A DNA stretch of 64,000 bases, from positions 124,001 to 188,000 of the IMG/VR virus record IMGVR_UViG_3300042895_001344. One strand, given 5' to 3'. Below, one piece after another: positions 251 through 17,871 of this stretch (position 1 is the stretch's first letter; each line of letters begins with the position of its first letter). The notes under the pieces were generated by a model that saw only the letters and a program-made list of their open reading frames with translations, was not told the origin of the DNA and ran no database searches. The position numbers were made by a program, and so were the translations under genes.

Positions 251-3200
251 TTACACTTTCTCCAATTTAAAATAAACAATATCACCATCTTGTAAATCTA
301 AATCTTTCATCAATTTAGGTGATAGAGCAATTCCATATTCTTTTTCATCCCTAATATTGTCAATTGGACCTATAGCTATTGGTTTAGTTTTATCTGAACT
401 ATCTTGATGATTTACTGTTATATTTTTATTTTTATTTGGATTTAGGAAAAGTGTTTTATAATCTGTTAATGTTTCATTAACATCCATTTTATCTAAAATA
501 AATCTGGTTGAATAGAAATAATTTTTATCACTAAATTGTCTAATATTACCCCAAGTAAACGCTGGATCTTGTTTAAAATTAGATTTAGTTATTAAAGACA
601 TACTGTCCGTATCGTTCATCGAATAATTTGATTCTCCCATTCTAACCACCTGTGCTCTTAACCATTTATCACCTTTATATTCAACTTGAACAATATATCT
701 AAATTCATTAAATCCATTATATGGTATTCCATTTACGGTTACTCCCACATCGTCTAAAGTAACCTTTTCTCCCGGTACTTTCTTTTTATCAGGACCCATA
801 TCATATGTGTATTGACTACCGTCGGCAGTTACAATTGATGCACTTGTTTCCGTAACTTTATCTGAACCATTAACCCTATTGATCGCCTTTTGTTGTAGTT
901 TATCAAATAATGTTCTATAACTTGACATAAATGAATCTGTCAAATCAGGTAATGCTGTATATGGCATTCTCGATCCTTTAAATTTGGTTACAATATTATT
1001 ATTCCTAATTTCATGACCAACTTCAGTTATCCAATATGTTCCTTTAAACATAGGGATATTTTTCAAATAGAAAAACATCGTAGGTTGTATCATAACATTA
1101 CCCATACAAGTTATTTCACATGTGTATGCCGCTTGTCTATAATACTCATATAAACCAATATCAACATTATGTGATGATGAACCCGATTCACTTCTAGCTA
1201 AGTTTTCTAATACGTAAAATGACTCTGTTGTATTTTTAATTGATGCCTGATCTAAACTAATACCTTTAAAAATACTTTGATTTTGATCTCCAAAACTTAC
1301 TTCAAATGCAACTACTTTATTTGTTTTAGATAAATCTCCCGTTTGAAATACTTTAGGTAAAGTAATCATAACTGGGTTATTATTAGTATTACCAATATTA
1401 AAACTATCGTCAGTAAATCTATATTTTTTATTATCTGACATGTCAGGTCTTGTCGAATTTTTACCTACATATTGTACTATAATTTTAGGTGATGATTCTT
1501 GATAATCAACTTCTAAGAATGTTCCAAATATATTTTGTGCTATTTTTTTGGATGGTGTTAATTTAGGTGTGTTTGAAAAATTTGTTCCATAGAAATTAAT
1601 ATAAGCTGGTAATGCTCTTAGATCAAAACCTGTATCTTGTAATAATATTGATATTGAACTGAATAAATTTTGTTTAATGTTTTCGGGTTCTCCTAAATTG
1701 AGTAATCGTGATATGTCTATAAAATATTCATTGCCTATGTCTTTATTAGCCTTATCTAAAAATAAAAACTCTTCTAAAAGTGACCTTTGACCTATAGAAT
1801 TTCCTGCAATCCATTTATCGTTCATAGATTTAAAGAAATTATATAACTCAACCTTTAATGGTTTATTATTATAACCATCAAAAAAATCTATTTTACTTTT
1901 AGATTCTTCAATATTAAAAGATGAAAATTGAGGTATCAAAGTACTAAAGAATAATGACATTCTATTATTTAGACCTGTATTATTTTCACTATTAAAAATA
2001 ATATTTTTATATAGATATTGTTGGAATGTATATTTGTCTCGTGTTCCACCATTTTTTATATATCCCGCGTAAATGTATATTAATGATCTAAACATTAATA
2101 CGTTTGATTCATTTAATTTAACATTATTATCTTTAAAGAAATCTAAATATTCATTATCTAAATATTCATTATTTAAAGACGTTCCAGTTACATACGGTCC
2201 TACATATAATTGAATATATTTTGTGTCTCCCGATTGTGCGGTCAAATCGTAAGTATCGTATTTAAATTTATCTGTTTTATTAATGTCAATAAAACCATTA
2301 ATTACATGTGGGTCTAACTCTTTTGGGTTTCCAATTGTTATATTTATTAAATCATTATTTGATAATAATGAAGTTGTAATTGTTTTTAACTTTTCAGATT
2401 GTTTCTTTTTTAAATTCTGAATTTGAGTATCAATGTTATCAGAATCACTATTTTTATCATATGAAAGGTTTACTATGTCTCTTAATACTTCTTGAAACTT
2501 ACCATATTTTGTTAAACTAAACGATTTATCAGAATAATTTAAATTAACTTTTTCAGATGCGAAGTTTAAAAAGTGAGTTTCAAAATCTTCTAACATTTGT
2601 GGATTAAAAGTCGCAATTAAATCAAATACCTTTTTATTGTTACTACTTAAATTATAAAAATTACCTATTGTTCTGTTATATTCTTCCGGTGAGAAAAATG
2701 TCTTACCACTATATGTGTTATTAATATATTCATCTTCCCAAATAATTCTAAAATTATTTTGTTCTTCTAACGCAAAAGAATTATCACTAAATGGTGTGTC
2801 ATTATTTACTAATGATTGTTTTTTACCGTGATGTAAGTTACCACCTGTGGACGGTAATAAAGTATATCCATTATTTCCATTATTAACATATTGTGTCCAA
2901 TAATTAATTTTGTTGGTTCCTCTACTATCGTATTTTTTTAATTTTAATTTTCCATTTGTAATTGCGGTTGTATAATTTTCAGTGGCACCACTTAAATATA
3001 TGAAGAAACTATCGTTGTTTACTACATTATAAAAAATATTATCATAATAAGGATGTATACCAACATCACTATAACCACTAGTGTCACCTGTATATCTAAC
3101 AGGTTGAGTCCCTCCTGAATTAGTAAAAAATGTTAAGTTATTTTGATTATCAAAAAATCTACTTCCATTTATATTTGTCGTTGTAAATCCCGTTACACCA

Positions 3201-6085
3201 CTATGTGAGGTAATACCGGTTATGATACAACCTTCATTTAGATTTTTTTGTTGACTTAATATATCTTTACCTTCTAATATATATTTTTTGTATCTGTGAT
3301 AAATTGACCCCCATTTCAACATTAAGAAATAAGGAACATATTGCGACGTACTAATTTCTCTAAATAATGATGAAACCATTATAATCATCCCATCATAATT
3401 TACATTATCATCCAAATCAACAAAAGGTAAAGAATTTAAAAATAAATAAGCCGATGCTGTATATCTACCATTTGGTCCGTTAACATCTGTATCCATAAAA
3501 TCCGCAAACAATTGTTTATGAAAATATGGGGTGTTTAATATGTTAGTTTTATTATTATCAACATTAATTGGCATTGAAAATAAATTAGTAGTATAACCTT
3601 GTTTAACCCAAAATTTTGAGTCCTTTTTTCCAGATATTAATCCTTGTGTTGTATCGATTTCTAAAAACCCTTGGTATGTAAAATTATCTACTCCGAATTT
3701 TTCAACGGAAGATCCATTAAGATTTAAATAACTTAAATATTTTGTTGAACTAAATGGATATATGTTCGTCCTATAATCATCAACTCTATAATTTAATAAA
3801 TTATTTTTTAATTTTGGGTATACTTCAACGTCATTAAATGTACGGATCGGAAAATATTGTTTAATGGAATATGATTGTGAATAAAATGATTTTAAATAAT
3901 CTGTTGTTGGTAAACTATCTAAATAATAATTATAACTCTCAAATGGTGCAATTTTCTGTAATTGTAATAAAAGATCAGTTTGACTTTTAATACTATCTTT
4001 TAATAATTTTCTTAGATTATTATCTCCTTTTACCGATTCTAATATATTTTGAAATTCAATATTCGCCAATTCTTTAATTGTATCTTTATTAAATGTATCG
4101 ACTAAATTATATGTTAATGCTCTTTCATAAATTTCATATACAAATGATGATGGTGTTTTATTTATATAAGGTAATATATTAGTGATCGAATTAGCCGTAT
4201 TGATTTTCTTTATTTTATTAACATCAGTATCAGTTTCAAATTGTGTTTTATTTTTATCAACTCCACTCTCTTTATTTGTTAATGAATCCACTTTATTTGT
4301 TGATATTCCAATATATGTTTCAATAAACTCAACTTCAGGCCATCTAACTGGATTATCCGAACCTAATCTAACATGAAAATCAGGATCGCCAGGATAAATA
4401 ATTGTATTTTCTTTACCTAAAATAGTTGATTTTAATTCCGGCCACGGATATATCGACTCTCCTTTTGATTCTTTAGAAAATTCACCTACTACTTTTTTTC
4501 TTGTGTCCGCCTGATCAATTGCTCTTCTGTGTACGTCTTTCATTAAACGTATTAGAACTTCAGCATTGGCTAATATAACTGCAAAAATATTTCTAATTGT
4601 GGGTTCAAATCCAAAACCGTTCTTTTTATTACGAACAATTTCGTTCATTTTTTTCTCCACATCATTTTCCAATCTATTTCTTTGTTGTTCAAAACTTCTT
4701 CTAACGTCTCGAATATCATCAACTAATTTCTCAATTGCAACCGCAACAAATTTTTGGTCATCGGTTGTGGTATAACCACTTATTCCCTCTATTTTGTTAA
4801 TACCTAAACTATTTTTTGAAAAAACAGAAGTTGTATTATTAATTAAAGATGGTTGTTGTGGTTTACTTGATAAAAAATTAGTAAACATCTGATTTTCATT
4901 TATTTTTTTATCATATAATTTTAATAAATTTTCTAATGTTCCATTACCATCACCTATTACTTGTGTTGTTTTCTTTTTGTCCTCGTTATTAACATAAAAA
5001 TATTGAACTATTGTACCGTTCGGTTGCTTGGAGTTTAATGAATTTACAGGAGTGTTAATTAAATTACTTGATGCCCACGATCTAACTGACTTTTCATATT
5101 CATCTATAGTTTCACCAAATTCTTTTGTGGCAGCAAATAATCTCATGTCAACCACTTGATCAAATATTTGTTTTTCCAATAAAGAATCTAAATTAGATGC
5201 AATAGTTAAAATTTCTCTAACTGTCTTTACAGGAAAATCTTTTGGTATAAGTCCTTTTAATTTATATTCATTATAAACTGTCTTTAATATTTCGTACCCT
5301 CTTGAAGATTTTTTTAATTCTTCTTTTTCTAATCCTAAAGTTTCATTAAAACGAGTTGTTCGTGTTGACTCATTAGGAAAAAGATATGGGGCATTTAATA
5401 TTCCTTGTAATGGAATATCGGACAACCACGCATATGTTGATCCAACGAATGTTGTACTAACTTCAAAATTACCACTAGATTCATTAAATTTACTTGTAAA
5501 CTTAACTAAATGAAGTCTATATTTGATCGCTTTACCATAATAACCTTTTACCGTTAAATAAAATATTGGCCAAGGTATATGAAAGAATGCTTTATATGGT
5601 GAATTTTCAGGTGATTCAAATAATGTTTTACCTCTTACATCAATAAAATTTATTCGAACTTGTGGTATCGCATTAAATCCTTTAATTTCTATTGAAATAC
5701 TATCGATACCAAAGGACTGTCCAGTTTTATCTGATTGAAAAAATTCACCTGTTGGATTACCTTTATTATCTTTTTTTTCTTCTGTATTTAAAAATGAGTC
5801 AGTCCATGTTGTATCATAGTCTTGTCCGTCTCCATTTTTTAGAAAATTAAGGGTTCCACTTGCAATACTTGTTAACGTGTTTGTTTCATTATCTGATACT
5901 AAAATAGATCTTGGAACGATGTCCGCCTCTAAATTAACATACATGATTAACTTTTCCGCTTGTATGTTTCTTGGGTTTACATTTCCATCCGCGTCAACAG
6001 TTGAGTTTGGGTCAATATAAATTAAATTATTTTGATCAACTTTTACTTGTATATCTTCAGTATTTGTTACGTTATTTTTCACCAT
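251..6085 (-). CDS. Very large baseplate hub-like structural protein (1944 aa)
   Basis: C-terminal segment YTCEITCMGNVMIQPTMFFYLKNIPMFKGTYWITEVGHEI...TKFKGSR resembles gp27/late-control-D hub proteins. Sits in the baseplate operon after the gp53/gpX-like gene. Confidence 0.6.
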   Translation of the reverse strand: MVKNNVTNTEDIQVKVDQNNLIYIDPNSTVDADGNVNPRNIQAEKLIMYVNLEADIVPRSILVSDNETNTLTSIASGTLNFLKNGDGQDYDTTWTDSFLNTEEKKDNKGNPTGEFFQSDKTGQSFGIDSISIEIKGFNAIPQVRINFIDVRGKTLFESPENSPYKAFFHIPWPIFYLTVKGYYGKAIKYRLHLVKFTSKFNESSGNFEVSTTFVGSTYAWLSDIPLQGILNAPYLFPNESTRTTRFNETLGLEKEELKKSSRGYEILKTVYNEYKLKGLIPKDFPVKTVREILTIASNLDSLLEKQIFDQVVDMRLFAATKEFGETIDEYEKSVRSWASSNLINTPVNSLNSKQPNGTIVQYFYVNNEDKKKTTQVIGDGNGTLENLLKLYDKKINENQMFTNFLSSKPQQPSLINNTTSVFSKNSLGINKIEGISGYTTTDDQKFVAVAIEKLVDDIRDVRRSFEQQRNRLENDVEKKMNEIVRNKKNGFGFEPTIRNIFAVILANAEVLIRLMKDVHRRAIDQADTRKKVVGEFSKESKGESIYPWPELKSTILGKENTIIYPGDPDFHVRLGSDNPVRWPEVEFIETYIGISTNKVDSLTNKESGVDKNKTQFETDTDVNKIKKINTANSITNILPYINKTPSSFVYEIYERALTYNLVDTFNKDTIKELANIEFQNILESVKGDNNLRKLLKDSIKSQTDLLLQLQKIAPFESYNYYLDSLPTTDYLKSFYSQSYSIKQYFPIRTFNDVEVYPKLKNNLLNYRVDDYRTNIYPFSSTKYLSYLNLNGSSVEKFGVDNFTYQGFLEIDTTQGLISGKKDSKFWVKQGYTTNLFSMPINVDNNKTNILNTPYFHKQLFADFMDTDVNGPNGRYTASAYLFLNSLPFVDLDDNVNYDGMIIMVSSLFREISTSQYVPYFLMLKWGSIYHRYKKYILEGKDILSQQKNLNEGCIITGITSHSGVTGFTTTNINGSRFFDNQNNLTFFTNSGGTQPVRYTGDTSGYSDVGIHPYYDNIFYNVVNNDSFFIYLSGATENYTTAITNGKLKLKKYDSRGTNKINYWTQYVNNGNNGYTLLPSTGGNLHHGKKQSLVNNDTPFSDNSFALEEQNNFRIIWEDEYINNTYSGKTFFSPEEYNRTIGNFYNLSSNNKKVFDLIATFNPQMLEDFETHFLNFASEKVNLNYSDKSFSLTKYGKFQEVLRDIVNLSYDKNSDSDNIDTQIQNLKKKQSEKLKTITTSLLSNNDLINITIGNPKELDPHVINGFIDINKTDKFKYDTYDLTAQSGDTKYIQLYVGPYVTGTSLNNEYLDNEYLDFFKDNNVKLNESNVLMFRSLIYIYAGYIKNGGTRDKYTFQQYLYKNIIFNSENNTGLNNRMSLFFSTLIPQFSSFNIEESKSKIDFFDGYNNKPLKVELYNFFKSMNDKWIAGNSIGQRSLLEEFLFLDKANKDIGNEYFIDISRLLNLGEPENIKQNLFSSISILLQDTGFDLRALPAYINFYGTNFSNTPKLTPSKKIAQNIFGTFLEVDYQESSPKIIVQYVGKNSTRPDMSDNKKYRFTDDSFNIGNTNNNPVMITLPKVFQTGDLSKTNKVVAFEVSFGDQNQSIFKGISLDQASIKNTTESFYVLENLARSESGSSSHNVDIGLYEYYRQAAYTCEITCMGNVMIQPTMFFYLKNIPMFKGTYWITEVGHEIRNNNIVTKFKGSRMPYTALPDLTDSFMSSYRTLFDKLQQKAINRVNGSDKVTETSASIVTADGSQYTYDMGPDKKKVPGEKVTLDDVGVTVNGIPYNGFNEFRYIVQVEYKGDKWLRAQVVRMGESNYSMNDTDSMSLITKSNFKQDPAFTWGNIRQFSDKNYFYSTRFILDKMDVNETLTDYKTLFLNPNKNKNITVNHQDSSDKTKPIAIGPIDNIRDEKEYGIALSPKLMKDLDLQDGDIVYFKLEKV

Positions 6086-6398
6086 AATATAGATTATACA
6101 ATTCTACACCTCTTTTATAATCTTGTAAAGAGCTAATTAATGGGTACGGTATTCTTATGAAGAAATTATCTGGTATATCAAATTCTAAACTTCCCGCCTG
6201 TGGATTTGCTAACATAATTAACCATCCAAAAGTGGGTCCACCATAATATTCTTGTGACATTTTATCTAATCTGTCTTTACCTTTCTTAAATAAAATATAC
6301 TTATCCGTTCCTTTAATTGGGATTTCAATTCCCGGTACAATTCTAAATGTACCATCATCTATAAAAAACTGATACCTATCAAAATAATCCCTACTCAT
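6072..6398 (-). CDS. LysM-like baseplate wedge protein (T4 gp53 / P2 gpX-like)
   Basis: DRLDKMSQEYYGGPTFGWLIMLANP...IRIP motif; 108 aa; position in baseplate operon. Confidence 0.75.
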   Translation of the reverse strand: MSRDYFDRYQFFIDDGTFRIVPGIEIPIKGTDKYILFKKGKDRLDKMSQEYYGGPTFGWLIMLANPQAGSLEFDIPDNFFIRIPYPLISSLQDYKRGVELYNLYYGEK

Positions 6399-9300
6399 TT
6401 TCTATAATAGTTTAATTTATCTGTCACATTATTTGATGATCCGAATAACTTTTTAACTTCATCTATAGTTACCACATCTTCTGGAGATTCTCCCATTGGT
6501 TCCAAATCAATCTTAATTTGTTTGTCATTTTTACGAACCGGATCTTTACTAAATTTAATATTAATTTCTGATGGTTGGTATAGTGATTGATTTAATTTTT
6601 TAGTTATTCTATCCAAAAGATCATTATCCGTTGTAGATAAAGTAGTTCCTATTTTACTAACTATAGATGATTTATCATCGTAAAATAATACTCTTATAAT
6701 ATCTTCAGCAATTTCAAATGTATATTGTATATTTAAAAAGTTAATTGAAGTATCTAATTTAGAATACATCTTTTCGGTATTCTTTTTTATATGTTCAATA
6801 CAATCACTATAATTTGAATAGAAGCTTACTTTTCTTTGTTCATCTGTTGTTCCGTCTAATTTATATATATTCTTTGTTACTTTTTCTTTTTCAATTTTAA
6901 CATCTCTAGCGTATTTTGTAATAAAATTAACATTATCAATAGATTTAATTAATTCATTTCTATTATTTTCAAAATCTGTAATATTTTTAAATGTTGATAA
7001 ATCAATCATTTTTGATGGTATTTGTTCTATCACATACGAGTGTAGAACATTAGCAACATCATCTTTTATATTTAATGGAATGGTGTCCTCAAGTTTCAAT
7101 ATCTTTAAAATATAATACTTATCTGATAAGAAGTTAAGGTCATTTAAATAAGTTTTTAACGAATCGGCGGTGTGATTACATAGTGAAGGTAAACTAGAAT
7201 TATTAGGATATAATCCAAATAAATTTAAAGTTGTTGCAGCTCCGCCGGTTTCCACATCATAAACATTTATTTTACGATAATCTTTATTAAAAACTAAATT
7301 TGTTAAATGTTTACCATATTTTGTTAGAGTACTATTATAAAAACTTTCATATGAGACAAAATATTGACTTGTATTTTTATAAAGATTATCAATAACGGTC
7401 GTATAATCTAATGCTGATCCATCTATCAAAGCACCAATATATTGTCCTTCAGATACGTTATTTTTACTAGGACTATCTTTTAATAATGTTGGTGGAAATA
7501 ATTTATTATTTAAACCTTGTATGAATTCTTTTGTAAATTCATTTGCATCCATACCTCCTATTTTTGTACTAGTTGATTCAGATCTTTCATCATACATTTC
7601 GGTATTTGCATAGAAATTAGATGATAATGCGTTTTGTAATCTTTCGATAGGTCTTTCTAAACCTTGTCCACCTAAGAAATTCAATTGTATTGTGACAGTT
7701 GCAATCATAGGTTGTATTCCAATACCTTCAGAATTCAAATCCCATACGTTTTCTTCAAATTGAATATTAAGATCTCTAATCACAACTTTTGAATTATAGA
7801 AATCACCAACTCTCATTACACAAACAGGTGGAGGTCCAAATGTTGTATTTCTCGCATTTATATCGGAATCATCAGATGATCCTTTTATTGGTATTGTGTT
7901 GCCCGGTCTTAAACATTGTTGTAAAAACGTCAATCGTGAGTTCAAACCTTCAGGAGTCATTGAGTGAAATCCAGGATGAAAATATCTTAATTTTTCTTTT
8001 AATGAACTATAAATCATTGGAGACGTTTCTTCTAATTTCTTAAAATAAAACTCTTCAGATAATGTTTTCATTATGATTTTTTTCATCAAATCAATAGGTG
8101 GTTTAGTTTTGTTAGTACTAACATTACCCGTAGGTGACATTCTTATACTAGACACGTTTGAAGGTCCATCTACATTCGTTTTAGTATCATAATCGATTGA
8201 TACAGTAGATTGTCTACATCCATATGATAATGGTGAAAATTTGTTTAAATTTGGAGTCTCGTACGTTACTTTACCACAGTCAACATTATCTACATTTTTT
8301 TGCTTTCCATAATTAATTGTTCTAAAAATTATAGACTTATCTAAACCATCAAAACCTAAATCTTTATTCAAGGTATAATCAACTTCAATTGGGAATACTT
8401 CAAATCCTGGTGAAAACTCTTTCGATGTTACGTTTTTAAACTCCCATTTATCTTTTACATTTGATTTTAATGTTTCAATAACATATCTAACAATAGAATG
8501 TGATCTTCTCATAGATAAGTTATAATCACTAACATCATCTCCTGTAGCTGAAGTTGTAGATCCAATTAAAATAACAATATCGCTATTTATATTTTTATTT
8601 TCTATATTTGTTTTTAATTTTTCAATTGCAGTTTTAAAACTATTAAAGTTTGTTTCTTGATTTTCAAAAACTTTTAACAAATCATCTTTAACATTTTGAA
8701 TTGATTGTGTTGATTCTGGTCCACTTATATTATCTTTTCCAAATACATTAACTAAATCTTTTTTATCGTTTTGACTAATAATAGTGATTAATGCGGTCTC
8801 TAATCTAGCTAATGCAGTTTGTTGACTTGTTGTTCCACTTAAACTTTGGGCAATATCATTATAATTCTGAATTGATTTAAAACTTGTTCCACTATCACTA
8901 TCTGGATCTGAATTAGGGAATATTAATTTTACCTTTAATGATTCATTTTTCTTATTAGCGTCGTTTGTTGAACTTCCTTCAGGATTATTCCCCACTATAG
9001 TCGGAACAGCATCTTTTAATCGATTAATGTCATTTGGATTTTTATTGGTGTTTAAATAATTCTGTATTGCAGTAATATCATCTTCATTTAAATTTGCATA
9101 TGTTCTTATTAAACTATAAAAATCAATATCTTTTGCTCCCGCAAAAAATGAATTAATATAATCATCCGCCTGTTCGTCGTTTAAATTTTTAAAATGTTCT
9201 CTAACAAGTAAATTCATAATACTTGGGTGATCCACAACAATTTTAAAATTTAATGTTCCACTTCTTTCAGTATTTTGATATGTATAAATTGGTTCGGGTC

Positions 9301-11158
9301 TACCTAAAAACGTATTAGATTCCCATTTAGCACTATTTTGTTCAGATACTTTTAAATCATATGGTGGAAACCACATTACTCTACCTCCGTTAGGTCCTCT
9401 TTCTGAGAAAGGTAAATCATTTACTGTATAACCTGGTAATGTTGATGAACCCCATGCTAAATTTTCAATTGACAACATATACTTTTTAGCATAAAAATTT
9501 TTCTCTCCTCTAACAATATTTGTTGAACCTGGAAATTCAGGGTTAGTCGTTCCGTCCGACATAGGAGCCATATTCAAATTCCATGTGTCTGACATAACAC
9601 TTCCATCAAAACGTCTTATACCTTTTCTTCTAAATGGTGTTTCTCCTCCCTTATAATATGGTTTATCTTCCGTTTCCTTATAAAACGGCATCGTATTACC
9701 ATAATTAAAATATGGTCTATCTTTAGTCCATACTCTTGCATATTCAACCCCTATATCTCTACCCGAATTATCTATATATTTTACACCTGAACCTCTTGAT
9801 ATTAATGTGTCTCCATCTTTAAAATATCTACTTGTTTGATCTATAACGTGACCGATATGTGCTAAAGAATCTCCACCATTTTGTGGTTTTGAATCCAATA
9901 TTTGTTGAGTAATTTCTAAAATTGAATCTGGCCTAAATTTATATCTTGTAGATAAATCTTCATTAATATTTTGTAAATTTACACCTTTGGTTGTTCCATT
10001 TTTACTAGCCCATGTTAATTTACCACCTATTTTACCTCCCTGTGTAATATTTTTATTACTATGAAAAAGTTCAGCAGCAATCGTATCAAACATTAATGAA
10101 AGATAATAACTACTTCTTATTGGTCTACCACTAAATAAATCGGTAGTGGCGTTTTTAACATTATTTGCTCTATCATCTCCAATATATGCAGCTCCGGCTG
10201 GTGCCTCAACACCTAATATACTTTTAACACCTTGAGCAACCATACTCGGTATTCTACCTAATCCGGTTGACATTTGAGATCTTGCACCTGTTGTATAGTT
10301 AGGAGCATAAGCGTTGAAACTTAATAAATCAAATAATCTATACTTTGTGGCGTCTCCCATATTTTCAATTAATATGTCGGACGGTTTTCTTGATGGTAAA
10401 GGTCTTCTTTGAATACCTACAATTGAACCTAATACCCCCGTTAAATCTTGCCATACCTTAGTTCCCGTAGAAACGTCTGTAGGTCTTACATTAATGGGTG
10501 CTCTTGGGTTTGTTAAGTAATCACCAGGTATTGTACTAAACGGTAATTGTGTTCCCGCCACGGTACCTAAAAAATCAATTCCTTTACCTAATATACTTCT
10601 AGATGCGGTAATTTTTTCATTACCCTCAATTAAAGGTTGTTTACCTCTAATAATGTTTATTAGTGTGTTAGTATTACCTAATAATGCTTCTCCTATTTTA
10701 TTTTTAGCAACCGTTGCGGTGTATAAATTTTGATTAATTCTTGCTAAAACGGGACCATTACTATTGGTTCTGATATTATGTGCCGCGAACTTAAATAATT
10801 CGGATTCCGTATCATAACTTCTAGTAGCCATAATACTAATCAAATTTTCGTCCGTCTTTACAAAATATGGATATAAATTTAAATTTGCTCTTCTTGGTAA
10901 ATCTGCAATTGTTTCTTTAATGAAATATTCAGTTGGTTTAAAAATATTAGATTTTTGTGGAACCAAAAGATCGTTCTTTCTATTGTCGTCGACTTGAGGA
11001 AGTAATAGATTTGGACTGTCTCCTAATGTTTGAATACTATAATCATCACTTTTAAAGGTTTTAGGAGACGGACTTCTTCCGTAAACAGGATCTAAGGTCC
11101 TATTTAACATTCTATCTCTAATGTCCTTAGTAGCGTCAAAACTTAAGTATTTTGGCAT
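6395..11158 (-). CDS. Baseplate / tail-tube initiator protein with internal OmpA-like domain (1587 aa)
   Basis: Two tube-like segments (WFPPYDLKVSEQNSAKWESNTFLGRPEPIYTYQNTERSG; PPVCVMRVGDFYNSKVVIRDLNIQFE) flank an OmpA-like signature (IGSTTSATGDDVSDYNLSMRRSHSIVRY). Directly downstream of the tape measure gene. Confidence 0.6.
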   Translation of the reverse strand: MPKYLSFDATKDIRDRMLNRTLDPVYGRSPSPKTFKSDDYSIQTLGDSPNLLLPQVDDNRKNDLLVPQKSNIFKPTEYFIKETIADLPRRANLNLYPYFVKTDENLISIMATRSYDTESELFKFAAHNIRTNSNGPVLARINQNLYTATVAKNKIGEALLGNTNTLINIIRGKQPLIEGNEKITASRSILGKGIDFLGTVAGTQLPFSTIPGDYLTNPRAPINVRPTDVSTGTKVWQDLTGVLGSIVGIQRRPLPSRKPSDILIENMGDATKYRLFDLLSFNAYAPNYTTGARSQMSTGLGRIPSMVAQGVKSILGVEAPAGAAYIGDDRANNVKNATTDLFSGRPIRSSYYLSLMFDTIAAELFHSNKNITQGGKIGGKLTWASKNGTTKGVNLQNINEDLSTRYKFRPDSILEITQQILDSKPQNGGDSLAHIGHVIDQTSRYFKDGDTLISRGSGVKYIDNSGRDIGVEYARVWTKDRPYFNYGNTMPFYKETEDKPYYKGGETPFRRKGIRRFDGSVMSDTWNLNMAPMSDGTTNPEFPGSTNIVRGEKNFYAKKYMLSIENLAWGSSTLPGYTVNDLPFSERGPNGGRVMWFPPYDLKVSEQNSAKWESNTFLGRPEPIYTYQNTERSGTLNFKIVVDHPSIMNLLVREHFKNLNDEQADDYINSFFAGAKDIDFYSLIRTYANLNEDDITAIQNYLNTNKNPNDINRLKDAVPTIVGNNPEGSSTNDANKKNESLKVKLIFPNSDPDSDSGTSFKSIQNYNDIAQSLSGTTSQQTALARLETALITIISQNDKKDLVNVFGKDNISGPESTQSIQNVKDDLLKVFENQETNFNSFKTAIEKLKTNIENKNINSDIVILIGSTTSATGDDVSDYNLSMRRSHSIVRYVIETLKSNVKDKWEFKNVTSKEFSPGFEVFPIEVDYTLNKDLGFDGLDKSIIFRTINYGKQKNVDNVDCGKVTYETPNLNKFSPLSYGCRQSTVSIDYDTKTNVDGPSNVSSIRMSPTGNVSTNKTKPPIDLMKKIIMKTLSEEFYFKKLEETSPMIYSSLKEKLRYFHPGFHSMTPEGLNSRLTFLQQCLRPGNTIPIKGSSDDSDINARNTTFGPPPVCVMRVGDFYNSKVVIRDLNIQFEENVWDLNSEGIGIQPMIATVTIQLNFLGGQGLERPIERLQNALSSNFYANTEMYDERSESTSTKIGGMDANEFTKEFIQGLNNKLFPPTLLKDSPSKNNVSEGQYIGALIDGSALDYTTVIDNLYKNTSQYFVSYESFYNSTLTKYGKHLTNLVFNKDYRKINVYDVETGGAATTLNLFGLYPNNSSLPSLCNHTADSLKTYLNDLNFLSDKYYILKILKLEDTIPLNIKDDVANVLHSYVIEQIPSKMIDLSTFKNITDFENNRNELIKSIDNVNFITKYARDVKIEKEKVTKNIYKLDGTTDEQRKVSFYSNYSDCIEHIKKNTEKMYSKLDTSINFLNIQYTFEIAEDIIRVLFYDDKSSIVSKIGTTLSTTDNDLLDRITKKLNQSLYQPSEINIKFSKDPVRKNDKQIKIDLEPMGESPEDVVTIDEVKKLFGSSNNVTDKLNYYRK

Positions 11159-11198: not shown

Positions 11199-13079
11199 TT
11201 ATTTTTTATTGTGTAACATAATATAAGGAGTTCCTTTAACATTAACCGCTGGTTCCATGTTAAATCCTTTATTCGTAACTTCTATCTGTGATTTTATAAC
11301 AAATTCGTTTGTTTTAGGATTCGATCTTTCATAATAATCTTTTTTCTCTTTATCGTAACCCTCAAGTCCTTTTCTTCCGGTTTCATCTCCCATAAGAAAT
11401 TTTCTCAATCTGTCGTTTTCTTTTTTGATCTGATTCTCCAAATCTTTGGTTGCAGATATTAAACCGTCAGTATACTTAGTCATTTCTTTACCGAAATTTG
11501 TCGCAACACCTTTTAATGTTTTATCCGAAAAATCTGTTGCCCATTTTAAATTTTCTTGTGCTATTTTTTCTAATGGAATTGCACCTTTGTATTTTGGATC
11601 ATCTCCTACATATTCATTTCTTCCAAATGCTCTATCTTTTGCTGTCTTAACACTTTTTAAACCCGCACCTTGTAACATATTTTCAATATTTTTAACTGAT
11701 GAAAATTGTTGTTTAGCAATTTGTTCAGGATTCATATCTTCAAAAGCCTTCCTATTAGCCTTTAATACATCTATTTGTGATTGTGTTAAGGAATCTAATG
11801 TAACTTCTGTTTGTTTACCAAATTTATCTGTTAAACTTTCAGGTATGGTAATTGACATTTTACCATCCTTCATTTGTGACATATTTGTAAGAAATTCTCT
11901 GTCATTTTTACTCATATCAAACCCTTTAGCTAATAAAACGTTATTAGCTTGTATTCTTTCTTGAGCAGCAATTGCTGTTTTATTTAGTTCTCCAGTTGTC
12001 ATACCTAATTGAGCTGCCATCTCTTTCGCTCTTCTTAAATTTGCACCCGTAACTTCAAACTTTTTTTGTTCATTATTGTATGTTGCTAAACCACCTGCAG
12101 CACCAATTAACGCATCTTGTAAACCCTCAACATTATTCGTTGCCATATACATTAACTTAAGTGGATCATTAAAATCACCAATTGCACCACCTAATACTTG
12201 TAAATTTGCGGTTAATTCAATTGCACTATCAGGACTCATAACTTTATCCGCAATCTTAAATACGTCATTCATATTCGTTCTAAATTCAAGAGATTTTTGT
12301 ATCATTCTATTTAATCCTTGAACACCGTTAGAAAACCCGTATTCGTTTAATTTACCTATATCTGTTTTCAACATTTCTGTTGTTTTCTTTGCATTTAAAC
12401 CTAAAGAAATTGACGATCTACCTGCCGTATCAATTTTTAATAAAGTATCGGCAGCACCAAATCCCACTTTTTCAAATTCACTCATTGTCTCCGACATATC
12501 TCTTAAAGAACTACCAAATGCTCTAGTTGTTACTAAAGAATTTTCCATCGTTTTTTGAGATAATAAGTTAAATCTACCAGATTTTTCACCTAACCCAGTA
12601 ACTAAATCACCCAAATTTTCCATATCAAATCCTAAAGTTGCTGCCATAGGAACGGTCTCTAATATGATATCTCTATATGCTCTTGATAGTTCTCCCGTAA
12701 TACCTATTTTTTCATTAATAGTTGTATGTAATTGAGACTCTCTTTCTAATTGTTTGAATATTTCATTTTGAAGTGCTGAGGCCGCAGTTTTGTAATTTGT
12801 TAACCCCTCCATATTAACTTTAAATTCACCACCCATTTCTGATTTTGATGAAACACCTTTTGCCATTGCTTTCGCAACATCTATTGGGTTAGTTAAACTT
12901 CTATTTGCACTTTGTGTGGTTGATGTAGTATTTGATTGTATTGATCTTCCGTATCTAGATTGATTACCGATCCAACTCTGTGTTGCAGGATCTCTTCCAC
13001 CATCATTTATATAAGCACCAACAGCAGAATTTTTATCTGCATAATTGTTTACGTAATATTCTTTATCTCTTACCGACAT
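11199..13079 (-). CDS. Tape measure protein (626 aa)
   Basis: Ala/Gly/Leu/Met-rich helical sequence; follows tube and chaperone genes; size similar to T4 gp29. Confidence 0.7.
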   Translation of the reverse strand: MSVRDKEYYVNNYADKNSAVGAYINDGGRDPATQSWIGNQSRYGRSIQSNTTSTTQSANRSLTNPIDVAKAMAKGVSSKSEMGGEFKVNMEGLTNYKTAASALQNEIFKQLERESQLHTTINEKIGITGELSRAYRDIILETVPMAATLGFDMENLGDLVTGLGEKSGRFNLLSQKTMENSLVTTRAFGSSLRDMSETMSEFEKVGFGAADTLLKIDTAGRSSISLGLNAKKTTEMLKTDIGKLNEYGFSNGVQGLNRMIQKSLEFRTNMNDVFKIADKVMSPDSAIELTANLQVLGGAIGDFNDPLKLMYMATNNVEGLQDALIGAAGGLATYNNEQKKFEVTGANLRRAKEMAAQLGMTTGELNKTAIAAQERIQANNVLLAKGFDMSKNDREFLTNMSQMKDGKMSITIPESLTDKFGKQTEVTLDSLTQSQIDVLKANRKAFEDMNPEQIAKQQFSSVKNIENMLQGAGLKSVKTAKDRAFGRNEYVGDDPKYKGAIPLEKIAQENLKWATDFSDKTLKGVATNFGKEMTKYTDGLISATKDLENQIKKENDRLRKFLMGDETGRKGLEGYDKEKKDYYERSNPKTNEFVIKSQIEVTNKGFNMEPAVNVKGTPYIMLHNKK

Positions 13080-13082
13080 ACC

Positions 13083-13090
13083 TATAAATA
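13083..13090 (-). promoter_or_regulatory. Late motif TATTTATA
   Basis: 3 nt before tape measure ATG. Confidence 0.75.
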
Positions 13091-13234
13091 CTATTGAGTA
13101 TTATTTTCCAACTCAATTATGTAATTTACATAATATCTACGTAAGTGAACCGGCATTGTTAATAAATCGCCGTAAGAAAACCCTTTTTTAATTAAAAATA
13201 AAATTTCGTCTAACTGTCCTTTCTTATATTCCAT
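13091..13234 (-). CDS. Small tail-assembly protein missed by the ORF track (47 aa, MEYKKGQLDEILFLIKKGFSYGDLLTMPVHLRRYYVNYIIELENNTQ); possible frameshift extension of the upstream gene
   Basis: Translated by hand. Fills the gap between chaperone and tape measure. The FSYGDLLTMPVHLRRYY motif resembles the small T/gp51-type chaperone partner. Confidence 0.75.
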   Translation of the reverse strand: MEYKKGQLDEILFLIKKGFSYGDLLTMPVHLRRYYVNYIIELENNTQ

Positions 13235-13973
13235 AGAAAGGGCGAAAAAACTCTACCCCAAATCCAATTCTAACTTGGACATCTTCTCCTGATGGGGTTC
13301 TTACTGTTTGGGTTAAATCTAACCCGGGTTTATTATCTTTTACAAATTTCCTAAAATCTTGTGAATCTTTAATTGGCATGGTTTCAATAAAACCTCTAAT
13401 TTTTAATGCGTCTCTCACCCCACCAACAGATTTAATCATCATCTCAAGTTGTTTGGTTATAACAGGTGCAACACCATTACCATTCCAACTCTCTTTAATT
13501 TTTTCAATTTCATCTTCTTGTTTTTGTGTTAAAAACTTGAACGTGATTTCCGTTTTACTTTTTTCTAAATAATGACCATATTCACCGTTTGTATCTTCTA
13601 CTAAATTAAAATCTTTTATTTTTAATGAACCTAAATCTACCTCAACGGTAAATTCATTTCCAGTTTTATCGTCTGTAATTGTTAAATTATAATCAGAACC
13701 AAATGCGGTATTTCTTAAAAAGATTAAAATTGCTTGTCTATCTTCCTCAACAATTTCTTCTATGTTTAAATCTTTATCTAAAATTTTTCTTTTTAAAAGT
13801 TCAGTAATAACGGTATTTGTATTTAAAAAACTTGGGGACGATAAAATGTTCTCATCTGAAGCCGTTAAATAAGCTACTCTTACCGATTTTTTCTTATTAG
13901 TATAATGAATACCTTTACTTGGTAATTCTATTACATCATAGGCAATCGCCGGGTCAATTCTAGTTTCTTCCAT
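13224..13973 (-). CDS. Tail/baseplate hub assembly chaperone (gp26/gp51-like, G-type)
   Basis: YDVIELPSKG...YLTASDENIL N-terminus, ends VEFFRPFYGI; lies between tube and tape measure genes. Confidence 0.7.
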   Translation of the reverse strand: MEETRIDPAIAYDVIELPSKGIHYTNKKKSVRVAYLTASDENILSSPSFLNTNTVITELLKRKILDKDLNIEEIVEEDRQAILIFLRNTAFGSDYNLTITDDKTGNEFTVEVDLGSLKIKDFNLVEDTNGEYGHYLEKSKTEITFKFLTQKQEDEIEKIKESWNGNGVAPVITKQLEMMIKSVGGVRDALKIRGFIETMPIKDSQDFRKFVKDNKPGLDLTQTVRTPSGEDVQVRIGFGVEFFRPFYGI

Positions 13974-14021
13974 AATACTATAATTTACTTAATAACTAGT
14001 TCAAAGTAAAGTTTTTAAAAA

Positions 14022-14076: not shown

Positions 14077-14565
14077 TTAGTATATCAAAATACATCTATC
14101 CATTCTCAAAGAACATGTAATATTAGCTAATTCATCTCTGTTATAGTCTAATTCACCAAAGTTCAAGTCAGTTAAGAAACAGTTTTCTAATAACCATTTT
14201 TCAACTACTACTCCTGTTGGGTCTAACATCTCCAATTCAATATCCTTTTTATAACCTGCAGCATAACCCATACGACCTGTTACAGATTCAGCATGTAAAC
14301 GGAACCATTCCATTAAAGCTTGAGAAGCTGAAGGTCCAATTGGATCTCTAAAAGTCATTTTAATTTCATTCCACTCAAATCTACCTGCAACATATGTTGA
14401 TGTGTTCAGGAAAGGAATTGCAACTGAATTGATTTTAGCACTTGGTCTTGACGCTGCAGATACATACCATTCGTTTATACCCAAAGATGAGTTGAATCTT
14501 ACGATAAATCGGTTGACCCTTTTTGGTTCGTAAGGTGTCGGCATTTTCATTAATAAATCGGCCAT
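14077..14565 (-). CDS. gp19: Tail tube protein
   Basis: YEPKRVNRF...GRFEWNEIKMTFRDPI...AAGYKKDIELEMLDPTGVVVEKW...FGELDY; directly after the sheath gene. Confidence 0.9.
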   Translation of the reverse strand: MADLLMKMPTPYEPKRVNRFIVRFNSSLGINEWYVSAASRPSAKINSVAIPFLNTSTYVAGRFEWNEIKMTFRDPIGPSASQALMEWFRLHAESVTGRMGYAAGYKKDIELEMLDPTGVVVEKWLLENCFLTDLNFGELDYNRDELANITCSLRMDRCILIY

Positions 14566-14886: not shown

Positions 14887-17871
14887 TTAGATATTTTCAA
14901 ATGAAGCTCCTGTTGGAGTAATAATGAATTCCACATCGATGTATTCAAGAGAACGAGTTGGTTTGATGTAAATCTTACCTCTCATTGTGTTTGCGTCGAT
15001 GTCTTCAGGATCGTTAGAAACTGTTACACGGAAGTCATACAAACCTCTTTCTTTCTTAATTGCATCCAAGATAGGGTTTACCAATCTTAAGAATTCATTT
15101 CTTACTTGGTCATCGTTTTGTTCAAACAATAATCTTACAGAAACTGCAGAAATTAACTTTCTTGCTCTTAATAACAATCTTCTTACGTTGATTCTATCCA
15201 AAGCGGATTCTCTAACTTGTAACGTTTTGTTACCCCAAATAATAGTACCTGTATCAGAGAATGTAGCGATTGGGTTAATTCTGTTCTTATATAATACGTC
15301 TCTATCGTCTAAAGTCAATTTTTTAGTTGCTTTGATAGCATTTATCAAACCTCTACTATAACCCGCAACTGCGAACCAAGGATAAGACACGTTGTCAGTT
15401 AAAGCAATATTCTTAACAACCTCACCTGTTGGTGGGATATATAATTGTGTTGCATTATCTGTATCTCTTACTTGAATCCAAGGCCAATATGTTGCCGAGT
15501 AGTTAGAATCTATACCTGCATTATCTAAAGCAGTAACAATATCAGTCGTTGCTGAAGGACCTGTGATATTTGGTGAGTTCATAATATATAATGAATCTGC
15601 TCTTTCAGTTTCAATCATATCAATCGCTTGATTAACTAATGAACTATGACGATCAAAGTTAATACCAGGTGTAGCAAATACGTTAATATCTACCGCTTCA
15701 GGATTTGAATATGTTTCAATACCTTGTAAGTAAGCGTAATAGTCAGAATTACCTACTGATTCACTAAACACTCCTCCGGGGGTTGTATGTCCTAACTTAT
15801 AAATAGATTTACCAAAAATATAACGATCGTCGTTAGTTCTTTCTGATCTGTATATATCCCAACCGTCTCTACCTCCGTAAACCGAAAAAGTGAATTTACG
15901 GAAATTAATATTAGTTAATTTATTATTACCATTATTATTAAGCTCATCTTGACCTTCTAAATCATATGGTGTTGTTTGGAAAGTTGTTGTTCCAGTAATT
16001 GTAGAGGCGTTTACAGACAAATGGAAACCAAATGTTTCTGTTGTTGCCATCTCACCTTTATATTTTAATAAATCTCTATCGAATCCAACAGCATCAGATA
16101 AACCTAACATAACTTTTCTTACCTTATCTCCACCTTCAATATTAGGTGAACCATTCACATCGTAAGTTTCAACATCACCCGCATCGTTATATTTTGTTTT
16201 GAATATTACATTACCTAATCCCATATTAATTCCTGATACAGTACCAAAGTTTTTGTTGTTTGCAAAACCTCTAAAACCAGCAGGAATAGCATCTACAGGT
16301 GCTCCGTCCGCCATAAGCAACATAATTCTTTTAGAAACTAACGCGTATTCACCATCAGATGTACCGATTTTTTTAGCTATATAACCTGGAGTATCTGGAT
16401 TCATAGAACATCTTGAATATTTTTCAAGAGCTACTTGATTCTCATCAGTATCGTTAAAATCACGAACCACTAAATCAAACTCCATAGTTTCTAAATTAAT
16501 ATTTTGAATATTGATTTTTACTTCAAAGTTAGCGGCCTCTCCATCGGAGATTGTAATAACTTGAAATAAATCAGCAACATTACCACCACGAACTTCAGAA
16601 ACAACCATCGGTGAAATTGTTGTATCCCATGGTTTTAAGTAATTATATGAATTAGAATCTTCTTCTGATTCATATGAAACGTCCATAGAAATACCTCTTA
16701 CTAATCCTCTTTCAAAGGCGGTTCCTAAATAATTAGGATATGATTCATGTACATATACCGGATAGTCACCTTTATCTTTATCAAATACATCAGTTCCTAA
16801 AACTTTAGAAATATATTTTGATGATGATCGATTTAATGAACAAACAAATTGTTTAACTCCACTTGTTGTACCTGTTACGTTGATTGAAAACTCACCCATT
16901 GGGTTTGTATTCATATCAGATCCCGTAACACCTGATAATATGAATTTATTATCATCCTTAACTTCATGTATTAATGTTTGTCCGCTATATATACCTCTTG
17001 ATCTTATTGCTGCAACCACTACATTATGGTATTCATCGGCTAAAAGTGCTTCCCAATCAAATTGAGTAATTGACCATTTGTTAGTTGAATTTGTAAATGT
17101 GAATAAATAAGAATAAATACCATTTACACCGTCACCGTCTGGAGGAGTGACCAAACCATCAGATTGGTGATGCATTGTATTCCACCATTCTTTTGTATTA
17201 TTACTACTACTATATTTTTCTCCAGATAATGGAGAAACTAATTCTGTACCATTTCCAACAATTGCACTATCTTCTGTTCCTTCCGTATTTCTTCCTATCC
17301 AAAAATATTCATTAGTTGATCCAGTAGTTGAACCTTCATAATCACCGTAAATATCTTTTAAATATGTTACAATATCAGTACCATCAACAGATGTTACACC
17401 TGACAAATGAGCAATAATTTCATTTAATGAATTTATTGAAGATCCGGTTTCTGTTGTTGTAATTCCTGTTGTTGTAATTGTTACACTACCAACTTCATTA
17501 GTTACGCCAGAATACCCTTCTAAAATTACACCACCTACGGTTTTAATACCGAATGTTTTATATGGTCTATAACCTGTAAGACCCAATACTCTCGTTACGA
17601 ATAATTGATTAGATTCTTGTAAATATGATTTTGCAACATATCCTAATTCATATTTTGGATTACCATCACTGTACTTTTCAGGTGAAGTAGATCCAAAATA
17701 CAATTTGAATTCGTCAAAATTTGAAATTAAAATAGGTTCGAAAGCTGGACCTTTTAAAGTCTCACCAGCTAAACCTAATGTTGTAACACCTACACTCTGT
17801 GCTACAAATGTTAAATCGAGCTCGGATGTATAAACACCTGGAGACACGAAAACTCTGTTATTACTTGCCAT
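14887..17871 (-). CDS. gp18: Contractile tail sheath protein (994 aa)
   Basis: N-terminal VFVSPGVYTSELDLT; C-terminal YPWFAVAGYSRG, RINPIATF, IWGNKTLQ, LDRINVRRLL, IKPTRSLEYI. Confidence 0.95.
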   Translation of the reverse strand: MASNNRVFVSPGVYTSELDLTFVAQSVGVTTLGLAGETLKGPAFEPILISNFDEFKLYFGSTSPEKYSDGNPKYELGYVAKSYLQESNQLFVTRVLGLTGYRPYKTFGIKTVGGVILEGYSGVTNEVGSVTITTTGITTTETGSSINSLNEIIAHLSGVTSVDGTDIVTYLKDIYGDYEGSTTGSTNEYFWIGRNTEGTEDSAIVGNGTELVSPLSGEKYSSSNNTKEWWNTMHHQSDGLVTPPDGDGVNGIYSYLFTFTNSTNKWSITQFDWEALLADEYHNVVVAAIRSRGIYSGQTLIHEVKDDNKFILSGVTGSDMNTNPMGEFSINVTGTTSGVKQFVCSLNRSSSKYISKVLGTDVFDKDKGDYPVYVHESYPNYLGTAFERGLVRGISMDVSYESEEDSNSYNYLKPWDTTISPMVVSEVRGGNVADLFQVITISDGEAANFEVKINIQNINLETMEFDLVVRDFNDTDENQVALEKYSRCSMNPDTPGYIAKKIGTSDGEYALVSKRIMLLMADGAPVDAIPAGFRGFANNKNFGTVSGINMGLGNVIFKTKYNDAGDVETYDVNGSPNIEGGDKVRKVMLGLSDAVGFDRDLLKYKGEMATTETFGFHLSVNASTITGTTTFQTTPYDLEGQDELNNNGNNKLTNINFRKFTFSVYGGRDGWDIYRSERTNDDRYIFGKSIYKLGHTTPGGVFSESVGNSDYYAYLQGIETYSNPEAVDINVFATPGINFDRHSSLVNQAIDMIETERADSLYIMNSPNITGPSATTDIVTALDNAGIDSNYSATYWPWIQVRDTDNATQLYIPPTGEVVKNIALTDNVSYPWFAVAGYSRGLINAIKATKKLTLDDRDVLYKNRINPIATFSDTGTIIWGNKTLQVRESALDRINVRRLLLRARKLISAVSVRLLFEQNDDQVRNEFLRLVNPILDAIKKERGLYDFRVTVSNDPEDIDANTMRGKIYIKPTRSLEYIDVEFIITPTGASFENI

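Follow-up and report, generated by a model that had tools for sequence, protein, structure and literature searches.

The 3' end of a gene for a tail assembly chaperone (TAC) within a 64,000-nucleotide (nt) stretch of viral DNA (positions 124,001 to 188,000 of IMG/VR virus record IMGVR_UViG_3300042895_001344; hereafter the window) very probably carries a programmed ribosomal frameshift of the G/GT kind, in which a shift in the +1 direction at UUU_CGC would give a 293-amino acid (aa) long form alongside a 249-aa short form. This reading is drawn from the comparison of sequences. A preliminary description of the same DNA, made from its letters, had proposed a G/GT-type fusion by either +1 or -2 slippage; the fusion by +1 is supported, and the -2 direction is disfavoured because many of the sites collected here permit no -2 re-pairing. 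The features concerned are as follows.

13224..13973, minus strand: short form of the tail assembly chaperone (TAC-N), 249 aa, T4 gp26/gp51 family (PF12322, phrog_150)
13253..13255, minus strand: TAG stop of the +1 frame, adjoining the slip site on its 5' side and bounding the shift window there
13242..13250, minus strand: proposed +1 slip site UUU UUU CGC, placed by the invariance of TTT-CGY and the rarity of CGC
13091..13246, minus strand: +1-frame extension (TAC-C part), F-ALS-MEYKK..., recognised by selection on its codons and by its homologues
13232..13234, minus strand: ATG of the 47-aa open reading frame, by clade comparison a dispensable, lineage-specific start codon
13091..13234, minus strand: 47-aa open reading frame in the +1 frame
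13224..13226, minus strand: TAA of the short form, the 3' limit of the shift window
13091..13093, minus strand: TAG, stop of the +1 extension

Frame layout, start codon loss and selection in the +1 frame

The order on the minus strand is sheath, tube, the 249-aa open reading frame (ORF), the 47-aa +1 ORF, a 626-aa ORF and two giant ORFs. The 249-aa ORF ends GTA GAG TTT TTT CGC CCT TTC TAT GGA ATA TAA, with GAG TTT TTT CGC at 13253-13242 and a run of six T (T6) at 13250-13245, and the +1 frame reads TAG (13255-13253) AGT TTT TTC GCC CTT TCT ATG (13234-13232) and on to TAG at 13093-13091. Given that the +1-frame TAG adjoins the slip site on its 5' side, any shift is confined to a shift window of only nine codons. 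The -1 frame at the 3' end of the 249-aa ORF, read by hand, stops after 11 codons, and a canonical -1 slippery heptamer (X XXY YYZ) accompanied by an open -1 frame is absent. This is the arrangement that the preliminary description had given (+1 open from the T6 to the TAG at 13091, -1 closed after about 11 codons), and all of its sequence statements and coordinates proved right when re-read from the window letters; translations were made without an alternative genetic code. An assembly error is excluded, given that an independent DNA run is identical to the window over 12999-13993, with no difference, and that two RNA-library contigs (13168-13350 and 13213-13363) cross the T6 with no insertion or deletion. 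The layout of this single genome is not above chance: in 10 of the 50 window ORFs of at least 100 aa the +1 frame stays open for 130 nt or more beyond the stop, which is ordinary here because the next gene starts there, and it is therefore for the relatives to decide.

A scan of IMG/VR gave 211 relatives, from which 80 loci of 72-100% protein identity were taken, their junctions comprising 42 distinct sequences. At the position of ATG 13234, from which the preliminary description had allowed for independent initiation, the codon is ATG in 7 of the 42, ACG in 33 and ACT in two, the change from ATG to ACG being synonymous in frame 0 (TAT to TAC). Half of the distinct sequences (21/42) contain no ATG, GTG or TTG in the interval from the upstream +1 stop to 25 nt beyond the frame-0 stop; the earliest codon that could serve as a start in these is 31 or 70 nt downstream, within the conserved peptide. 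The +1 peptide (consensus YKKGQLDEILFLVKKGFSYGDILTMPVYLRRYY) is conserved in the clade with many synonymous changes: read in the +1 frame, the extension has a ratio of non-synonymous to synonymous polymorphism (pN/pS) of 0.20, whereas its bases give 2.26 and 1.15 when read in the two remaining frames. The ratio is 0.17 for the 22 +1 codons that precede the first available start in many loci; the value for the body of the chaperone gene is 0.28. The loss of the ATG, together with purifying selection in the +1 frame, indicates that genomes in which this region lacks a start codon nonetheless translate it in the +1 frame. An overlapping ORF in another frame, conserved as protein and devoid of a conserved start codon, is expected of a chaperone of the G/GT type and is seen here. 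In-frame fusions were looked for in close relatives and none was found, the best 120 all being 249 aa.

It is conceivable that the 47-aa ORF is instead a separate small gene, initiated at ATG 13234 and perhaps coupled to termination at the TAA, with no fusion being made. The ATG is indeed present in this strain and in the minority of clade sequences counted above, but the 35 of 42 with ACG or ACT show it to be dispensable, and in the 21 sequences with no canonical start before the peptide the codons are still under purifying selection. Overlapping starts are common in the window (10/50), and the lack of a Shine-Dalgarno site at the 47-aa ORF says nothing, given that the genome hardly uses them (4 of 42 starts); the sequence upstream of the ATG is, however, U/C-rich, unlike the A-rich leaders of other window genes. 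In one locus, L105, the domain does form a separate gene that has its own ATG, but the distant clades have no conserved start, and the internal Met starts annotated in them cut off the conserved core. An invariant ATG beside a variable slip site was looked for, and the opposite was seen, the ATG varying and TTT-CGY being invariant. A separate gene in place of a fusion is thus improbable, and independent initiation at ATG 13234 is a possible extra route in this one strain.

Homologous extensions, slip sites and the proposed shift

Distant homologues of the 249-aa protein (20-30% identity) are found in Flavobacterium phage immuto, Microcystis phage Mel-JY01, Bacillus phages HSE3 and SP-15, Streptococcus phage GXN1, Rhodothermus phage RM378 and two huge uncultured phages; when the locus was compared with cultured phages by megablast, nothing matched. 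In immuto, Mel-JY01, HSE3 and SP-15 the chaperone gene follows the tube gene and is itself followed by a small 'hypothetical' ORF and then by the annotated tape measure. In all seven GenBank records examined (six from cultured phages, one from an assembly of an uncultured phage) the +1 frame continues open through the stop and codes for a homologous extension, the core motif of which is roughly F-F-G-L-x-x-E-Y-R ... G-G-Y-S-F ... M-P-I-x-L-R. Three further scans added relatives of the distant phages, bringing the total to 178 loci in four clades; in 177 of them the +1 frame continues open for 120 nt or more beyond the chaperone stop, and the -1 frame does so in three. Loci within a clade are kin, and the independent support for these counts consists of the four clades and the seven GenBank records. 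The more distant clades have no conserved start codon, and the GenBank starts of the extension ORF in immuto (L081:5827-5937), HSE3 (L084:3746-3916), SP-15 (L086:3812-3931), RM378 (L085:3701-3877) and Mel-JY01 (L082:5728-5964) are internal Met or TTG codons of ORFs labelled hypothetical, that of immuto missing the whole conserved core. None of the cultured members examined has the shift annotated.

The 52-aa +1 peptide, folded together with 26 relatives in AlphaFold2 (AF2), is predicted to form three helices, at 6-21, 26-31 and 34-51, with a predicted local distance difference test score (pLDDT) of 92. Eight extension peptides had no family match in Pfam or PHROG, and a fold search with the extension model returned generic helix-loop-helix matches only, with Z below 6 and no specific neighbour.

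Within the window's clade, the codon immediately 5' of the slip site in the +1 frame is TAG in 28, TTG in 13 and TGG in one of the 42 distinct sequences, and this interchange indicates that the +1 frame upstream of the slip site is not under selection. The +1 codons upstream of the second Phe vary freely in the clade alignment (AGT/AAT, and TTT/TCT too), which puts the shift no further upstream than the second TTT. All 42 sequences have TTT followed by CGY, the sites being TTT TTT CGY or TTC TTT CGC, so that the TTT TTY pattern singled out in the preliminary description is conserved, with the proviso that the first Phe codon may be TTC. Elsewhere the site is TTC TTT CGT or TTT TTT CGT in HSE3, GXN1 and kin; TTT CTT TGG, TTT CTA TGG or TTT TTT TGG in the immuto clade; TTC TTT TGG or TTT CTA TTC in the LR756508 clade; TTT TTT CAC in SP-15; and T7 TGG in Mel-JY01 and RM378. 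What these sites share is a frame-0 UUU followed by C or U, on which tRNA-Phe can re-pair one base forward. A sub-clade (L091, L093, L094) lacks UUU-C/U and has CCC_A, another classic +1 quadruplet, and sites of the HSE3 type carry both UUU-Y and a CCC quadruplet; a +1-competent P-site quadruplet is present in every short shift window. In the window, CGC accounts for 6 of 637 Arg codons (0.3 per 1000 codons) and is nearly the rarest of them, AGA making up 73% and CGT 18% (5.8 per 1000). A rare CGC in the A site fits a pause on a hungry codon, and the pairing of UUU-to-UUC slippage with a GC-rich CGC, as first put forward, agrees with this codon usage.

The long form might alternatively be reached by -2 ribosomal slippage, for which the Mu shift was cited in the preliminary description, or by an RNA polymerase that slips and drops one U on the T6. 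Both routes need a homopolymer run, and although most of this clade has T6, and Mel-JY01 and RM378 have T7, such a run is absent from many sites: TTC TTT CGC, TTT CTT TGG, TTT CTA TGG and TTC TTT TGG have a longest T run of 3-4 and no -2 re-pairing, and yet occur in the same layout. For polymerase slippage T6 is in any case short, and the two RNA-library contigs have no insertion or deletion at the T6, a weak point given that contigs drop rare variants and that DNA is possible in RNA libraries. Both routes are accordingly very unlikely, and +1 is favoured over -2 because TTC TTT CGC, TTT CTT TGG and TTT CTA TGG allow only UUU-to-UUY re-pairing. That the +1 ORF has no function and is open merely by chance can be set aside, for although open frames across stops are common in the window, the comparative data already contradict it, with a pN/pS of 0.20 in the +1 frame only, homologues in 177 of 178 loci from phages of four host phyla and an extension modelled at a pLDDT of 92.

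For the +1 frameshift, it is suggested that most ribosomes would read to the TAA and give the 249-aa short form, and that a minority would pause with tRNA-Phe on the second UUU (13247-13245) and the rare CGC (13244-13242) in the A site. The tRNA-Phe would then re-pair +1 on UUC (13246-13244) and decoding would resume with GCC, a shift that would add 50 residues after F243, forming the predicted three-helix domain, to give a long form of 293 aa (243 + 50). The tryptic peptide predicted across this junction is IGFGVEFFALSMEYK in the window, and its immuto equivalent would end ...GVSFFGLTPEYR. If lambda G/GT is a guide, the tape measure protein encoded by the next gene would be coated by both forms, and the additional domain in the long form may recruit another tail part; neither form would be expected in the virion.

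Upstream of the site, a GGGG lies at 13256-13259 (minus strand). Its Gly codon GGG, a rare one (5% of Gly codons), precedes GTN GAR TTT TTT and is invariant at the third base in all 50 unique clade sequences, although neighbouring third positions vary. A role for GGGG as a stimulator of the prfB kind was considered and set aside as unlikely: it stands 7 nt upstream of the slip codon, which is the wrong spacing, and such sites are hardly used in this genome, Shine-Dalgarno-like motifs preceding only 4 of 42 starts of long ORFs, the leaders of which are A-rich. Nor does the site belong to the prfB (RF2) type (CUU_UGA with a Shine-Dalgarno-like stimulator 3 nt upstream), the A-site codon here being the sense codon CGC.

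Among known systems, lambda G/GT, P2 E/E' and Mu likewise have the gene directly upstream of the tape measure and obtain a short and a C-terminally extended form from one gene. The lambda G/GT type further shares the short overlap near the 3' end, the downstream ORF with no conserved start and, on modest Z values here, a C-terminal half resembling the TAC fold (PMC5009743), but it shifts -1 on an X XXY YYZ heptamer where +1 on UUU_CGY is proposed here, and the chaperone of the window, a PF12322 member, is larger at 249 aa and has an additional N-terminal domain. Tail chaperone frameshifts are among the most conserved cases of viral recoding; nearly all those known are -1, and T4-type tails have been treated as an exception (PMC5009743). 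Rare +1 chaperone shifts have been reported in other phages, such as that of the haloarchaeal myovirus HSTV-2, a contractile-tailed virus whose shift is described as 'very likely +1' (PMC5009743) and to which the present case is likened by shift direction and gene type alone. Sites of the form UUU_Ynn readily shift +1 in bacteria, and influenza A PA-X uses UCC_UUU_CGU (PMC5009743), in keeping with the earlier remark that UUU-CGN is a known +1 site in some eukaryotic viruses. PA-X shares with the window the P-site UUU to UUC, a rare CGY in the A site and the lack of an evident stimulatory structure; it differs in the E site, which is UCC there and UUU or UUC here, and the host here is bacterial, probably not using Shine-Dalgarno sites. 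The site of Yersinia YopN-TyeA, a bacterial UUU_Ynn +1 site, may be likened to UUU_CGC here.

The chaperone family and its relation to T4 gp26 and gp51

The 249-aa protein matches PF12322 (T4_baseplate) at 30.3 bits against a gathering cut-off of 24.5, with residues 28-230 on positions 13-204 of the 219 in the profile (29.8 bits when PF12322 was searched within its own genome), and it matches phrog_150, 'baseplate hub'. NCBIfam has no match for the chaperone, the 626-aa or the 1587-aa protein, and a search of the PDB by sequence gave nothing meaningful. Its AF2 model, built from 26 diverse sequences, has a pLDDT of 85 and a predicted template modelling score (pTM) of 0.76. Foldseek found nothing in the PDB at an E value of 0.001 or below, and the BFVD matches of the model are T4-type 'baseplate hub assembly' proteins. 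An exhaustive aligner run against 48,161 PDB chains placed 3fgx (Z 5.8), 3klu (Z 5.1), 2ob9 (Z 4.9) and 5ir0 (Z 4.5) first, the four matches covering residues ~125-224 and each Z lying below the general trust level of the tool. These structures, 3fgx, 3klu (YqbN), 2ob9 (the HK97 chaperone) and 5ir0 (the PLE1 satellite chaperone), are all tail assembly chaperones (PMC9603447, PMC12987554), and to have four TACs ranked first would be hard to get by chance, modest though the Z values of the modelled fold are. The gene stands between the tail tube and the putative tape measure, the same order as in immuto, Mel-JY01, HSE3 and SP-15, and this position, together with best fold matches to solved TACs, indicates that the name tail chaperone, given at the outset, is right in function; the databases call the family 'T4 baseplate hub' (PF12322).

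Two zinc-ribbon-like CxxC pairs are found in most family members, including T4 gp26 and gp51, HSE3, SP-15 and LR756508, and the window clade and immuto clade are without these cysteines (alignment A1); their absence is a lineage loss and not an exclusion from the PF12322 family.

In T4 the family occurs as two separate genes with no frameshift, whereas a single gene with a +1 extension is found here; common to both are the Pfam family, the predicted fold class in BFVD and an E-F-F motif at the end of the short form. PF12322 spans residues 1-206 of the 208 in gp26, but only 1-201 of the 249 in gp51, so that gp51 carries an extra tail of 48 aa, the size of the extension here. When the extension family was compared with 31 gp51 homologues by hhalign, extension residues 12-44 fell on gp51 214-244 with an E value of 0.05, and with a hidden Markov model of the gp51 tail 19 real extensions ranked before the first of 212 decoys (best E 0.006); the kinship of tail and extension is suggestive, not proven. 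T4 genes 26 and 51 have no +1 extension, genes 25 and 27 following directly. The window's own 217-kb record has one PF12322 gene and one extension copy, as has a 100%-complete relative of 335 kb, and given that there is no second paralogue, a long form in this lineage can only arise by recoding. Vladimirov, Gautam and Davidson (2022) reportedly described gp26/gp51 as a T4-like TAC pair. The T4 proteins are hub assembly chaperones that are absent from, or doubtful in, the particle (PMC3004832), and some T4-like phages have one short chaperone gene and a longer fusion gene with no frameshift, according to an account of Vladimirov et al. 2022 (PMC10274946), with which the likeness of gp51 tail and extension agrees. 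The 3' end of T4 gene 26 (L088:5803-5830), GAG TTC TTT GAG TTA CTA TAA, keeps E-F-F, followed by GAG and then by gene 25; its GAG TTC TTT may be a relic of a slip site.

This raises the possibility, somewhat short of an even prospect, that the +1 shift on UUU_Y (sometimes CCC_N) is ancestral to, and still widespread in, the whole PF12322 family, and that T4 26/51 arose by duplication and in-frame fusion. If this is true, the shift extends over phages of Bacteroidota, Cyanobacteria and Bacillota as well as huge uncultured phages, with annotations missing it throughout, and T4, which has long been cited as the one exception to the G/GT rule, descends from a frameshifting gene.

A number of points weigh against the programmed +1 frameshift and its attribution to a chaperone. 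Support for the fusion product is, in every member, at the level of nucleotide and deduced protein sequence and not of the protein itself. No stimulatory RNA structure was found at the site (consensus -7.3 kcal/mol with almost no covariation; single-sequence z 0.09), and efficiency may for this reason be low. Separate initiation is possible in this strain and the six other distinct sequences that have the ATG, as it is in the 13 that have TTG just before the slip site. The sole exception among the 178 loci, L105 (IMGVR_UViG_3300001528_000621, 2190-2545), has its extension homologue in the -1 frame, where it has ~25 extra N-terminal residues and begins at an ATG of its own, 3 nt beyond the stop of the chaperone; the domain seems to be a separate gene there and can apparently work unfused. 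The similarity of the gp51 tail to the extension is weak and the Z values of the chaperone matches are low, as stated above. To these may be added a complex prediction for the tube protein and the 52-aa extension, the score of which, 0.00, bears neither way.

A deeply conserved +1 shift on UUU_Y in PF12322 appears to be undescribed in the literature searched, the content of Vladimirov et al. 2022 excepted. A passage of PMC12846349 credits 'polyT slippery sequences in TAC-N genes of T4-like phages' to that paper, and given this remark part of the finding may already be known. The lake-water lineage of the window and several cultured phages would share a +1 version on a minimal UUU_Y site, in genomes that barely use Shine-Dalgarno sites, and mechanistic work in bacteria would gain from it a naturally occurring +1 site already mapped by comparison. 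The finding further corrects the annotation of the gene pair as 'baseplate hub' and 'hypothetical', and ties T4 gp26/gp51 to the general chaperone scheme.

Neighbouring genes and the phage

The genes on either side of the chaperone are as follows.

14887..17871, minus strand: tail sheath protein, 994 aa (phrog_23 at 1e-61; PF04984, PF17482)
14077..14565, minus strand: tail tube protein of the T4 gp19 type, 162 aa (phrog_4542 at 4e-28; PF06841)
11199..13079, minus strand: putative tape measure protein, 626 aa (by position and a weak language-model match)

The 626-aa protein is called a tape measure from its position, that of the annotated next gene in immuto, HSE3 and SP-15, and has a weak language-model match to PF10145 clusters (score 0.90). 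It has no match in Pfam, PHROG or NCBIfam, and BLASTP detected no similarity to the immuto tape measure. The sheath is unusually long at 994 aa, its sheath domains occupying only residues ~690-990 and its ~690 N-terminal residues being lineage-specific. Two giant ORFs on the minus strand (6395-11158, 1587 aa, and 251-6085, 1944 aa) follow the putative tape measure; they have no PHROG match and are presumably baseplate or tail-tip proteins.

The stretch was found in lake-water metagenome runs from 20 studies and its family has 3578 members, so that this is a very abundant lake-water jumbo phage lineage. The 'T4-like myophage' of the preliminary description holds for the tail module only, the phage being an uncultured lake-water jumbo phage with relatives of 335 kb. 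The window has a GC content of 31% and no tRNA genes in its 64 kb, and the few Shine-Dalgarno sites and A-rich leaders hint at a Bacteroidota-like host. One 211-kb record (G002, the record of locus L005) is classed by IMG/VR as a provirus; its chaperone gene is identical to that of the window, and the lineage otherwise has the look of a lytic jumbo phage.

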